Below, piece by piece: positions 52,013-57,447 of a stretch of DNA of 64,000 nt (position 1 is its first letter; every line of letters begins with the position of its first letter). Below the pieces are notes generated by a model. The model saw nothing but the letters and a program-made list of their open reading frames with translations, was not told where the DNA came from and did not search any database. Made by a program: the position numbers and the translations under genes. This DNA is from Pseudomonas aeruginosa PAO1. GTDB lineage: Bacteria > Pseudomonadota > Gammaproteobacteria > Pseudomonadales > Pseudomonadaceae. The stretch is from assembly GCF_000006765.1 (NCBI RefSeq), contig NC_002516.2; one strand, 5' to 3'.

Positions 52013-52088
52013 TCCGCGATAGCTCAGTCGGTAGAGCAAATGACTGTTAATCATTGGGTCCCTGGTTCGAGTCCAGGTCGCGGAGCCA
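52013..52088 (+). tRNA. tRNA-Asn(GTT)
   Basis: 76 nt TCCGCGA...TCGCGGA-G-CCA, anticodon loop CTGTTAA. Confidence 0.97.
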
Positions 52089-52680: not shown

Positions 52681-54678
52681 TCAGGGTTCTCGCCGCCTCT
52701 GGCGATAGATCCAGTCGACGATTTCACCGTCAGGCGCATAGCCGCTGACGGTTTCCCGCAGCAACTGGCGAACCCGCGAGTAGTCGTCCTTCTCCACGGC
52801 GGCCAGCAACTGCTCCAGCACGACCTTGAAGGCCTCCCAGCTCAGGTGTTCCTCGTTGGCCCGCATGATCATCGGATGGTCGGTGGGATTCACGTTGTCA
52901 CCGATCAGCAGCTCTTCGTAGAGCTTCTCGCCAGGACGCAGGCCACTGAACTCGATGGCGATGTCACCATGGGGCGAACGCTCGGAACGCACGCTCAGGC
53001 CGGACAGGTGGATCATCTTCTCGGCGAGCTCCAGGATCTTCACCGGCGGCCCCATGTCCAGCACGAATACATCTCCGCCCTGCCCCATCGAACCGGCCTG
53101 GATGACCAACTGCGCTGCCTCGGGAATGGTCATGAAGTAACGGGTGATGCTCGGGTGGGTGACCGTCACCGGGCCGCCGCGCTTGATCTGCTCGCGGAAC
53201 AGCGGAATGACCGAACCGGACGAACCGAGGACGTTGCCGAAGCGGACCATGGTGAAACGGGTCTTGTTGACGTGATGCACGTCCTTCCGATCGCCGAACA
53301 GCACCGGTGCCGATTCGTTGCTGAGCGCCTGAAGGACCATCTCCGCCAGGCGCTTGGTGCTGCCCATCACATTGGTCGGTCGCACCGCCTTGTCGGTGGA
53401 AATCAGCACGAAGTTCTGCACGCCGACCTGCACCGCGGCCTGCACCGCATGCAAGGTGCCTATCACGTTGTTGAGAACGCCCTCGGCGATGTTGTGCTCG
53501 ACGATCGGCACATGCTTGTAGGCCGCCGCATGGTAGACGGTATTGACCTTCCAGGTACGCATCACGTCCACCAGGCGCTCGGGATTGCGCACCGAACCGA
53601 GGATCGGCAACAGGTTCACCGAAAGCGACTCGCGCTTGATCCGACGCTCCAGTTCCTGATGGATGCTATAGAGGTTGTATTCGCTGTGCTCGAACAGGAT
53701 CAGCACGCTAGGCGAACAACTCATGATCTGCCGACAGAGTTCCGAACCGATAGAGCCGCCCGCCCCGGTCACCATCACCACCTGACCGCGGATGCACCGT
53801 TCCAGCAGCTCCTTGCGCGGTGCGACGCTGTCGCGCCCCAGCAGGTCAGCGATGTCCACCTCCTGCAGGTCGTCCACCTTGACCCGGCCGCTGGCCAGGT
53901 CCATGAAGCCGGGCATGCTGCGCACGTGCAGCGGGAACGGCTCCAGGGACTCGAGAATCTCTCGGCGCCGGGCCCGAGTGGCGGAAGGAATCGCCAGGAG
54001 AACCTCCTGCGCGCCCGTCTCGTCGATCATCTGGCGGATATGCTTGGCGGTATAGACCCGCAGACCGGCGATGACCCGGTTGGCGATCTGCTTGTCATCA
54101 TCGATGAACGCCACCGGACGCATCGCCCGACCGAGACGCAATGCCGCAACCAACTGGTTGCCGGCCGCCCCCGCGCCATAGATAGCCACCCTGGGCAGGC
54201 CATCCTGGCGGTTGAGAAATGGTACCGACTGCACAGCAGAGTACCAGTCTCCCATGAAATACTGGCGCATGGCCAGACGCAAGCCGCCGATCAGCAGCAT
54301 GCTCAACCACCAGTAGTTGAACACCAGGGAACGCGGCACCACCGCCGGCGGGGAGCGGTACCAGTAGACCAGCAACGACAGGACCAGCGCGGAAATGGTG
54401 ACGGCCTTGGCGATCGCGATAAGGGCGTCGTTGCCCAGGTAGCGCATCACCGCCCGGTACATGCCGAAGCGGATGAACAGGGGAATGGCCACCAACGGGG
54501 CGGCGATGAACAGCCAGGCATGGCCGCTAAACGGGCTGATCATGTCTTCTGTGCCCAACCTGACCAAGAAAGCCAGCCAGAGGGATAGCCACACAAGAGT
54601 CACATCGGCAGCGACTTGCAGCATTCGCTTATAGCGGCGCGGCAATCCCAGGAGCTTTATCCTCAAATTATCCAACAT
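52681..54678 (-). CDS. wbpM: UDP-GlcNAc 4,6-dehydratase (CapD-like), membrane anchored
   Basis: 665 aa; four N-terminal TMs, GAGAAG, TGAGGSIGSE, HAAAYKHVP, STDKAV, MGSTK, RFGNVLGSSGSV, RPGEKLYEEL. Confidence 0.97.
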   Translation of the reverse strand: MLDNLRIKLLGLPRRYKRMLQVAADVTLVWLSLWLAFLVRLGTEDMISPFSGHAWLFIAAPLVAIPLFIRFGMYRAVMRYLGNDALIAIAKAVTISALVLSLLVYWYRSPPAVVPRSLVFNYWWLSMLLIGGLRLAMRQYFMGDWYSAVQSVPFLNRQDGLPRVAIYGAGAAGNQLVAALRLGRAMRPVAFIDDDKQIANRVIAGLRVYTAKHIRQMIDETGAQEVLLAIPSATRARRREILESLEPFPLHVRSMPGFMDLASGRVKVDDLQEVDIADLLGRDSVAPRKELLERCIRGQVVMVTGAGGSIGSELCRQIMSCSPSVLILFEHSEYNLYSIHQELERRIKRESLSVNLLPILGSVRNPERLVDVMRTWKVNTVYHAAAYKHVPIVEHNIAEGVLNNVIGTLHAVQAAVQVGVQNFVLISTDKAVRPTNVMGSTKRLAEMVLQALSNESAPVLFGDRKDVHHVNKTRFTMVRFGNVLGSSGSVIPLFREQIKRGGPVTVTHPSITRYFMTIPEAAQLVIQAGSMGQGGDVFVLDMGPPVKILELAEKMIHLSGLSVRSERSPHGDIAIEFSGLRPGEKLYEELLIGDNVNPTDHPMIMRANEEHLSWEAFKVVLEQLLAAVEKDDYSRVRQLLRETVSGYAPDGEIVDWIYRQRRREP

Positions 54679-54763
54679 CCTATTTATCAGCCCCGTTCAA
54701 TACATCCATACCAACCAGACAGATCAGACAGATAACCATGGCAACAATATGGCAAGGCCCACG

Positions 54764-55196
54764 CTACGTCTCAGGACATCCCCTCCCAAGACTCGTCGCC
54801 ATCCAAGCCATAGGAGCATACGCGATAAGCCCCCAAGTACTCCGTCGATAATGCTTAGTACTACCAGCAATGCTAGGGTAATAACCAGAAGAAACTGATC
54901 ACAGCCACAAAGGATAACCGGCAAATGCCACTTCAGCACGACACCAACGTGCCATCATGCGTGACTCGATAGCTCTGCCGAATTTTATCGCCTCATAACA
55001 AACGATGCAGCAGCAAAGTAAAAGTGACATCGAACACGAGCACGTCGAGTGGAATCAGCCAGCGTCCGAGCAGGATGCAAAAACCCGCCCCCCCATGGCA
55101 ATGCTCAAAAAATCACTGCCAGGCCCCTGAAAACACACGCAGGGAAAATCCCAGATCAGCTCCACATGCACGGATCGCCACAGCACCGTCGATACC
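54764..55196 (-). pseudogene. Frameshifted 3' remnant of a second wbpL-like (WecA/MraY family) gene
   Basis: Manual multi-frame reading: LIWDFP..F.G.GSDFL / WLIPLDVLVFDVTFTL..RLL*GDK / SHA*....HLPV / WLLP/LALLVVLSIIDGVLGGL/AYAP...GCPET*. Colinear with the C-terminal third of WbpL at 56428-57447. Confidence 0.85.
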
Positions 55197-55214
55197 TATC
55201 ACAAGGATCGTAGA

Positions 55215-56418
55215 TGACCTGCCCCCAGTTTTAGTACGCTGCCTAGGTAGTAGGCCCTGGGGTTGACATCAATTTTCCTGCTTCAGTTGCTGCTGGCGAG
55301 TTCGCCAACTTGCAGCAAACTCTAGCGAGGTGAGATTGCCAATGGCGCTGGACGGTCGGTGCTCGTTGTAATCGTGCCGCCAGGCCACGATGCGGATTCT
55401 GGCTTCGACCAGCGAGCAGCAGCAGTGCTCATTGCGGAACTTGCCGTTGAATGACGATGAAGGCGTTCTGCGTGGGCTTGCCGGACTGAGTCAGCTTCAA
55501 CTTAATATCACGCCGATAGGCCCACTGATCAAGCGCCTTGCCGGTGAACTCGGGGGTGCGGATCGCCTTCGGGTAGCCGCGCAACCGTGCCATCTCGTCC
55601 AGCGCCCGTGTGACACGAAAACCGCTGATACCGTGCTCCACCAGGATGCCAACCGACTCCTTGGTGAAGTCATCGACCACCGTCAGGCATTTGATCCGTC
55701 GCCCAGTGCTGAGCGCGTCGAAGACGAAATCCATCGACAAGACCTAGTTCGGTGCGCTCGGCAGGCTCAGGCATTCGCACGCCACCGCGCCCCTGTGGCG
55801 GCGCCTCCGCCGCTTCACCATCAAGCCGACGGCTCAGTATAGCCGGTAAGTCCGCTTGTAGTTGATCTGCACACCAGCACGCCGCAGCAGAATGTGCAGG
55901 CGGTGATAGCCAAAGTGCCGAAGCCCTTGCCAGTTCCACCAGTTGGGCTTGCAGCTCGGTGTTTTGCACACTAGTTCGCGGCTGGTGGCACAACACAGAG
56001 CGGGACAGCCTGAACAACTGACAGGCACGACGCTCGGAGATGTCGGTTTGCGCCTGCATCTCCTGCCCCCCCGCCCCGCTGCCGGGCTCCCCCTTTCCCC
56101 GGGTGACCACTTTCAGCGCCCCGATGTCGAGGAGGGACTCGGCGAGCAACTTCTTCAGCCGGCTGTTTTCCAGTTCGAGATCCTTCAGGCGCTTGGCATC
56201 CGGCACGGTCATGCCGACGAACTTGGCCCGCTAGGTGTAGAACGTGGCATCACTGAAGCTGTGTCGGCGACACAGCTCCTTCACCGGCACACCGGCTTCT
56301 GCCTGCTTCAGAAAGTCTAGAATCTGTTCTTCAGTAAAACGCTTTTTCACTGCCGTCTCCTGCTCGGAAAACAGACTCTACTAAGTTCGGCGTGGTACTG
56401 AAATCGGGGAGCAGGTCA
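55215..56418 (-). mobile_element. Decayed IS3-family (IS407-group-like) insertion sequence, about 1.2 kb; I recall it being named IS1209
   Basis: Imperfect terminal IRs TGACCTGCCCCCAGTTTTAGTAC (55215) and TGACCTGCTCCCCGATTTCAGTAC (56418, minus strand); orfA and orfB relics; no flanking target duplication. Confidence 0.92.
55277..56350 (-). pseudogene. IS3-family transposase orfA/orfB pseudogene
   Basis: OrfA MKKRFTEEQILDFLKQAEAG...FYT* (TAG at 56231-56233 where Trp is expected). OrfB fragments in several frames: FGYHRLHILL, SMDFVFD, LTVVDDFTKE, KPTQNAFI, DYNEHRP. Confidence 0.9.
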
Positions 56419-56427
56419 ATCCACGGC

Positions 56428-57447
56428 TTAGGATTTTTCCAAGGAACCCGCCTTGTATCCTACCGCCAAGAGGCAAAGAGGAGCATAAGCAACCAGGATA
56501 CCGATGAAGCCGCTGATCCAACCCAATGCAACCATCAGTGCCAACGGCAACAACCAAAGAGTGTTGATAGCCAGAACACCCAAGGTAACCCGCAGATGGC
56601 TAGCATAACGACGCGAGGCAAACTGATAAGCGTGGCTGCGATGCGCCTCATAGAATTTCTCCCCTCTGGCGATCCGGCGGATCAGAGTATAGGTTGCATC
56701 AACGATGAACACTCCCAGCAATATCAACCAGCACCAGAACAGCGAGGGGGCGGTCCATGCAGCCTGAATAGCTAGTGCACCAATAACCATACCAAGAAAA
56801 CCACTCCCCGCATCACCCATGAAGATTCGAGCTGGAGGGAAGTTCCAGATCAGGAAGCCGGCGACCGCGCACGCCAGCAACAGAGGGATACCAACCATCG
56901 CGACATGCCCTGTAAGCCAGTAGATCAGGGCCCCTCCTACACAGACACCAATGGCCTCGACACTGGCAATACCATCAATGCCATCCATGAAGTTATAAAG
57001 GTTCAGCACCCATACCAAATAGAAAACTGCCAATACGTGGCCCAGCCATCCTAAGTCGACAGCATGCCCAACCACATCCAGCGGCGGGAAACCACCCGTC
57101 CACAGCAAGATCCATATCGCTGCTGAGAAATGGCCGAGCAGCCGCCAACGCGCAGCAATGTGCCCATGGTCATCCAGGAACCCTAACAGTGCCACGCCAG
57201 AACCTGCACCCAGCATCGCCCCCCCCCAGCCGCCGGAGATACTGCCTGCACTCAGCATCCACACCAACGCTGCAAGGAAGACCAGAACGATTGCAACACC
57301 TCCCCCCCTAGGCGTCGGTTGACTGTGGGAGCTACGGGCATTCGGAACATCCATCAGTTTCGTCGCTAATGCATAGCGACGCAGCCCCCAGGTAGCGACA
57401 AATGAAAACAGCAAGACAACTAGACACGCGATCATCCAGATCATCAT
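56428..57447 (-). CDS. wbpL: Undecaprenyl-phosphate sugar-1-phosphate transferase (WecA/MraY family)
   Basis: RSSHSQPTPRGGG, GFLDD, NLYNFMDGIDG, FMGDAGS, AHRSHAYQ. Confidence 0.96.
   Translation of the reverse strand: MMIWMIACLVVLLFSFVATWGLRRYALATKLMDVPNARSSHSQPTPRGGGVAIVLVFLAALVWMLSAGSISGGWGGAMLGAGSGVALLGFLDDHGHIAARWRLLGHFSAAIWILLWTGGFPPLDVVGHAVDLGWLGHVLAVFYLVWVLNLYNFMDGIDGIASVEAIGVCVGGALIYWLTGHVAMVGIPLLLACAVAGFLIWNFPPARIFMGDAGSGFLGMVIGALAIQAAWTAPSLFWCWLILLGVFIVDATYTLIRRIARGEKFYEAHRSHAYQFASRRYASHLRVTLGVLAINTLWLLPLALMVALGWISGFIGILVAYAPLCLLAVGYKAGSLEKS

Follow-up and report, generated by a model that had tools for sequence, protein, structure and literature searches.

The window analysed here is a 64,000-nt stretch of Pseudomonas aeruginosa PAO1 (NC_002516.2), and all coordinates are positions within it. 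In the region surrounding the fragment described below, all of the genes are carried on the minus strand. Read in the direction of these genes, the O5-type wbp cassette, including wbpJ and wbpK, leads into the resident wbpL (56428..57447, minus strand), an intact open reading frame of 339 aa with the Pfam domain PF00953, the stop codon of which lies 9 nt from the end of an insertion sequence (IS). The IS (55215..56418, minus strand; 1204 bp) is a decayed, ISPa32-like element of the IS3 family (IS407 group), recognized by its identity to ISPa32 and its terminal inverted repeats. Directly beyond it is a wbpL pseudogene fragment of 444 bp (54771..55214, minus strand), delineated by frameshift-aware and nucleotide alignment and by a maximum-likelihood (ML) tree, with the IS end at 55215 as its upstream limit. 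The homologous stop codon of the fragment occupies 54771-54773 and is followed by an old wbpL-wbpM intergenic spacer of 92 nt (54679..54770, minus strand), homologous to a 94-nt spacer in another P. aeruginosa cluster type, and by the ATG of wbpM at 54678. The wbpM gene itself (52681..54678, minus strand) is intact (665 aa), and its first ~151 nt (54528..54678, minus strand) form a serotype-linked 5' part, as judged by identity to the alleles of two other loci, L009 and L021. The G+C content is ~62% in wbpM, ~60% in the IS, and ~50% in the fragment.

Other P. aeruginosa loci were sampled through exact copies of two conserved neighbours, a PA3140-like protein (109 aa) and TyrB, and yielded six further cluster types, one of which, the L009 type, is also represented by the loci L018 and L046. 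In all six, an intact wbpL lies directly upstream of wbpM on the same strand, with spacers of 12-197 nt, and the fragment, separated from wbpM by 92 nt on the same strand, occupies the position that wbpL has in those types.

Two other features of the region were noted. A tRNA-Asn (GTT) is present downstream of wbpM on the plus strand (52013-52088), between tyrB and a comEA-like gene. The intact wbpL contains plus-strand runs of nine C (57219-57227) and seven C (57302-57308), which are G runs in the sense of the gene, and these tracts are candidate slippage hot spots for O-antigen loss; a 7-base homopolymer run also occurs inside the fragment (55089-55095).

A broken wbpL homologue upstream of wbpM

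The original prediction placed a colinear homologue of the WbpL C-terminus, broken by at least five frameshifts and two internal stops, at 54764-55214, an extent that proved essentially right. The three minus-strand frames of 54690-55262 contain ELIWDFP, WLIPLDVLVFDVTFTLL, LL*GDK, SHA*WHVGVVLKWHLPV, FWLLP, and LIAYAPMAW, and all of the motifs on which the claim had been built (LIWDFP, *GDK, SHA, and others) are found there. Using a frameshift-aware local aligner written for this analysis (BLOSUM62; gap 11/1; frameshift 14), residues 199-337 of the resident WbpL aligned with 55159..54770 at a score of 97 (50 identities in 126 positions), compared with 40.2 ± 5.8 (maximum, 58) for 100 dinucleotide shuffles of the DNA and 42.4 ± 6.0 (maximum, 65) for 100 shuffles of the protein, while the reversed protein and the opposite strand scored 36 and 32, respectively. 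The L009-type WbpL gave a score of 203 with 78 identities in 125 positions (62% of amino acids over matched codons) and five frame changes (shuffles, 38-44 ± 5-8; maximum, 72). Frameshift-aware alignment to WbpL/WecA proteins is thus significant (97-203 vs ~40 ± 6-8 for shuffles), and 55214..54771 is confirmed to match the C-terminal ~45% of a WbpL/WecA-type transferase in a colinear but broken form.

Conventional searches recover less, as tblastn with the resident WbpL finds only separate, weak pieces because of the frame changes within the fragment, and the separate pieces have no match in Pfam. The latter is expected, since PF00953 (Glycos_transf_4), which both intact WbpLs match at E 1e-31 to 1e-36, covers WbpL residues 78-228 and the region of the fragment lies mostly outside of it. 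These two observations (best tblastn piece, 28 bits) would be the grounds for a chance or compositional likeness, a membrane-protein-like reading of non-coding DNA, but the probability of this is negligible and it was rejected, with the colinear alignment 9-30 SD above shuffles, a DNA-level match to the L009 locus at E 4e-170, and a conserved position directly upstream of wbpM.

The fragment spans approximately residues 185/205-342 of the L009-type WbpL, the 3' ~45% of the gene and ~140-155 codons' worth of sequence. Homology is weak in the last ~55 nt beside the IS (55160-55214), at ~41% identity in a MAFFT alignment and 25 of 49 positions by direct count, and the remaining 5' ~55% of this wbpL was not found elsewhere in the 64-kb window. 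Without most of the PF00953 domain and the catalytic core, the fragment therefore cannot encode an enzyme; its homology to the WbpL/WecA family is colinear, while an uninterrupted frame of ~340 codons and the Glycos_transf_4/catalytic core are absent.

Relative to the L009-type gene, the nucleotide alignment of the coding part contains eight indels (-2, -4, -19, +3, -1, -2, -1, and -1), seven of which break the frame, and three in-frame stops occur on the frameshift-aware alignment paths. Mismatches between the fragment and L009 amount to 28, 23, and 39% at the first, second, and third codon positions, respectively, whereas pairs of functional wbpL genes from different types have 19-39, 8-22, and 50-71%. 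This combination of low third-position and high second-position divergence indicates a fragment that is specifically related to the L009-type gene and has nevertheless lost coding constraint. Most of the substitutions are transitions, and GC-to-AT changes are in mild excess. Depending on the aligner, nucleotide divergence from the living L009-type gene is ~22-30%, too large for the parent to have been a modern allele, which suggests that the joining event was far older than current strain diversity or took place in another lineage.

Nearest relatives of the fragment

When the intact wbpL of each of the seven P. aeruginosa cluster types was aligned with the fragment, the L009 type scored 203 and the other six, including the resident O5 type, scored 87-122. 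Many of the 120 database homologues of the resident WbpL also outscored the resident protein (up to 145), and when the L009 protein was used as the query of a further search, no closer relative of the fragment emerged, the next score being 156 among 234 WbpLs (230 other WbpLs ≤156). In a set of 5.8 billion proteins, the WbpL next in similarity to the L009 protein has ~72% identity with it, and an exact 27-mer of the fragment had no match in 185,579 species-representative genomes. At the nucleotide level, the fragment is 69% identical to the L009-type wbpL and 53% identical to the adjacent resident wbpL, and in an ML tree built from the fragment and the 3' 450 nt of eight wbpL genes, the fragment joins the L009 type on a long branch with an ultrafast bootstrap of 100. 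The data support the fragment as a specific relative of the L009-type wbpL, closer to it than to any other wbpL compared, its neighbour included.

These comparisons bear out the view of a diverged second wbpL that is not a recent duplicate of its neighbour, and the comparison across serotypes and the phylogeny both identify the L009/L046 type as the nearest relative; the adjacent wbpL, which as the closest relative would have pointed to simple duplication, is far more distant. Two wbpL-like sequences 1.2 kb apart in the same orientation could bring to mind a tandem duplication of the resident gene with subsequent decay of the downstream copy, but the fragment is nearer the L009 type than its neighbour by every measure (scores of 203 vs 97, nucleotide identity, and tree) and the L009 homology runs on into the spacer and wbpM. 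Local duplication of the O5-type wbpL is rejected by the nearest-relative test and is left as a very improbable explanation.

The cluster of the L009 type comprises, in order, wzz, wecB-like, wecC-like, wzx, and wzy genes and two glycosyltransferases, followed by a fused ADH/GFO oxidoreductase, a heparinase-II/III-like gene, a GT4, PglC-like, PglD-like, and PglE-like genes, wbpL, and wbpM. This arrangement differs from that of PA14/O10, where an epimerase (orfM) precedes orfN and wbpM. The gene content is compatible with an O unit containing L-GalNAcA and a derivative of bacillosamine, which we take to be that of O3, and based on gene content and known O-antigen structures, as opposed to a typed reference, the L009 type is probably serogroup O3/O15; a search of the literature for confirmation of the serogroup name found none.

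The resident wbpL has different affinities. Its nearest relatives (76-83% identity over residues 150-339) are in putida-group pseudomonads, and Pseudomonas sp. HMSC08G10 (L031:1-9100) possesses a syntenic block from wbpG to wbpL, 74.5% identical at the nucleotide level over 7 kb, in which similarity ends at the wbpL stop. There, a separate wbpM homologue (73% amino acid identity to that of the window) follows 91 nt after wbpL with no IS. This uninterrupted wbpL-wbpM junction indicates that the resident wbpL belongs with the cassette and that the fragment is the odd one out.

Insertion sequence, spacer, and wbpM 5' end

The IS shares with ISPa32 the terminal inverted repeats, TGACCTGC(T/C)CCCCGATTTCAGTAC and its complement, transposase homology in the form of HTH_Tnp_1 and rve remnants, and 87-89% nucleotide identity (89.4%) over the full length. 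In contrast to the 1236-bp ISPa32, the element in the window is 32 bp shorter due to eight deletions (1, 4, 2, 9, 2, 12, 1, and 1 nt) that have destroyed the transposase frame and fragmented the open reading frames. Assignment to IS3/IS407 therefore draws on the terminal inverted repeats and the transposase homology, with intact orfA/orfB and the 4-bp target-site duplication both absent. The flanks read GGAT on the cassette side and TCTA on the fragment side, compared with a plasmid copy of ISPa32 flanked by the 4-bp duplication CAAA/CAAA. The missing duplication would fit IS flanks that came from different molecules or from a deletion, though loss of a 4-bp repeat simply by mutation could explain it too. 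Burrows et al. reportedly named the IS at this O5 border IS1209 in 1996 and are said to have proposed horizontal acquisition.

The IS and fragment are present in nine of nine O5-type loci examined, at 98.9-100% identity over 1861 nt (54600-56460); within 54600-55260, five of the loci have no differences and three have 2-3 SNPs. Elsewhere, in one L020-type strain, a DDE_Tnp_1 transposase gene interrupts a glycosyltransferase upstream of the epimerase and wbpL (L026:12847-13700), a separate instance of IS insertion into an O-antigen cluster.

On its other side, the fragment is continuous with DNA of L009 affinity. A blastn match between the window and L009 extends unbroken into wbpM, from -383 to +249 relative to the wbpM start (81% over 645 nt), while the DNA match of the other types begins only at -45 (L021), at -29 (L010), or inside wbpM. 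The 92-nt spacer is 73.6% identical to the 94-nt L009 spacer. Within it, and reaching into wbpM, 54658-54712 (approximately -33 to +20 relative to the wbpM start) shows no differences from the L009 type although both flanks have diverged, and this block may hold translation or transcription signals of wbpM.

Amongst the types, wbpM is ~99-100% identical beyond nt ~200 (beyond ~400 for L008/L012), while nt 1-200 are type-linked and 64-81% identical between most types. The first 200 nt of the window wbpM are 91.5% identical to L009, 91.0% to L021, and 65-79% to the other types, with all 17 differences from the L009 allele falling at nt 21-151; the 5' ends of L009 and L021 share 98.5% identity. 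Overall, the serotype-linked part extends ~150-400 nt into wbpM (54279-54678, compared with L008-L012, L020, and L021), with 64-92% identity between types, and as the remainder is nearly identical, the serotype-specific region has its right-hand border inside wbpM and not upstream of it. The similarities support one block of L009-family ancestry that would include the fragment, the spacer, and the 5' end of wbpM. Third-position divergence is 39% in the fragment and 20-26% in the adjoining wbpM 5' end, the latter comparison being a small sample, and the two may not share a single, simple history.

In L021 (10431-10590), an unrelated wbpL is joined to an L009-family wbpM 5' end, and the sequence becomes similar to the window and to L009 abruptly at -45. 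The L021 spacer is a second, different junction, free of any IS, onto the same family of wbpM 5' ends.

At the opposite border of the cluster, the ihfB ends of the O5-type and L009-type loci have only ihfB itself in common, and no second L009-type footprint was found at the ihfB end of the O5-type locus. The left end of the O5 type (L036:9286-11100; a LapA-domain gene and the wzz region) has its best matches in two other cluster types, L045 and L040 (identities of 90% and 83% over the first 400-520 nt), and is unlike the L009 type (L046). Judged by these matches, the two ends of the O5-type locus have different affinities.

History, present role, and comparison with known systems

The fragment is very probably a non-functional relic of the 3' part of an L009-lineage wbpL, still attached to its own spacer and to the first ~150 nt of its wbpM, in a locus that was joined through the IS. 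An O5-type cassette joined in this way to the wbpL relic, spacer, and wbpM 5' end of another lineage would make the present locus a chimera. The idea of a fossil wbpL-wbpM junction from a different lineage, cut off at the IS, has fared well: the fragment is truncated exactly at the IS end, homology to L009 is unbroken into wbpM, and the cassette with its own wbpL exists as a natural unit elsewhere. In the proposed sequence of events, an O5-type cassette, ending 9 nt past its own wbpL, would have been joined through an ISPa32-like element to the middle (codon ~185-205) of an older wbpL. The most likely route would be an IS-associated rearrangement, either recombination between two IS copies or an IS-mediated deletion, and the deletion variant would have removed the cassette's own wbpM and the 5' half (~185-205 codons) of the other wbpL. 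After the join, the fragment, by then redundant, and the IS would both have decayed neutrally. That the IS made the junction is suggested by the truncation exactly at the IS end together with the missing 4-bp target duplication.

The fragment side may have been the resident DNA and the O5 cassette the incoming one. The roles could be reversed, with the IS, fragment, and wbpM 5' end incoming to a strain with the O5 cassette, or the whole chimera could have been imported as one block with a right-hand crossover in wbpM at nt ~150-400, and to these possibilities we give real weight, if somewhat less than even. The serotype-linked sequence reaches ~150-400 nt into wbpM in every type, followed by ~99-100% identity, which implies that crossovers normally fall inside wbpM and places the fragment to the cassette side of such crossovers. 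Among the places examined, a WbpM protein identical to that of the window occurred only beside O5-type clusters, and the heavy decay and divergence of the fragment contrast with the near-identity among O5-type strains. Additionally, wbpM has been reported as a high-recombination region and switches of whole clusters between serotypes are documented (PMC4600120). Against these possibilities, the fragment and wbpM 5' end have no close relative other than a P. aeruginosa type, the WbpL that comes after it being ~72% identical to the L009 protein, and the fragment 27-mer is absent from the species-representative genomes.

The large divergence (~22-30% of nucleotides) and the lack of a same-type trace at the left (ihfB) end both bear on when the join would have taken place. 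Two points, the usual position of crossovers inside wbpM and the contrast between third-position divergence of ~20-39% and the near-identity of O5-type strains, make an early join, possibly one that took place outside the present species population, no less likely than a simple arrival in an ancestor of P. aeruginosa.

As a gene, the fragment is without function today, and at most it is a spacer or an upstream region for wbpM. Searches for regulatory features returned no Rfam family match at E ≤1 in 54400-55400, no consensus promoter in a sigma-70 scan of 54500-56500, and, in the same interval, one weak terminator-like site, below shuffle expectation. With the IS lying between wbpM and the cassette, transcription of wbpM must start somewhere in the stretch made up of the IS, fragment, and spacer. 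Since the decayed IS cuts wbpM off from cassette transcription, the wbpL relic and spacer, alone or together with an outward-reading end of the IS, could conceivably have been exapted as a putative promoter/5' leader of wbpM in all O2/O5-group strains, though this seems rather unlikely. If so, expression of an O-specific antigen gene would depend on pseudogene DNA, and the block from -33 to +20 would be the selected part.

As a relic of a chimeric join, the fragment would be a concrete, datable scar in the LPS locus of the O2/O5/O16/O18/O20 type (the PAO1 type), where a wbpA-L cassette with relatives in other pseudomonads appears to be IS-joined to the wbpL-wbpM junction of another serotype lineage. 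Studies of serotype evolution gain a hypothesis of ancestry, an O3-type right-hand junction, and the IS and fragment may be used as a marker for the O2/O5 serogroup. The extension of the serotype-specific region ~150-400 nt into wbpM matters for the borders used during in-silico serotyping and for recombination analyses. The known picture of LPS synthesis is unchanged by the fragment, which is of moderate interest to specialists in P. aeruginosa LPS and serotypes.

Dead partial genes at the edges of exchanged polysaccharide loci are a well-known kind of feature, and IS- or repeat-associated remnants occur in enterobacterial O-antigen clusters. The literature searched, which did not extend to Burrows et al. 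1996 and Raymond et al. 2002, contained no description of this wbpL remnant, and an earlier description is possible. The nearest counterpart amongst the sampled types is the intact wbpL of L009/L018/L046, with which the fragment is colinear over residues ~205-342 (62% amino acid identity; 69-81% nucleotide identity by aligner and span) and shares site, orientation, and spacer; in contrast, only the 3' ~45% is left in the window, with seven frame-breaking indels, three stops, and no catalytic core. A comparable relic in the capsule island of Neisseria meningitidis is the galE2 remnant of region D' (PMC5349592). Both are dead partial copies, at the border of an exchanged polysaccharide locus, of a gene that the functional cassette carries intact, and both can be read as scars of exchange, and they differ in that the wbpL relic is the allele of another serotype lineage and not a copy of the resident gene, is more decayed, and abuts an equally decayed IS. 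Within P. aeruginosa, switching from O4 to O12 in ST111 has occurred by recombination of the whole O-antigen cluster (PMC4600120, PMC11637443). As proposed for the window, this replaces a cassette between ihfB and wbpM, with wbpM as the recombination-prone border. Those switches are recent and homologous with large flanks and, to our knowledge, leave no internal relic, whereas the junction in the window appears to be old and is bounded by an IS.
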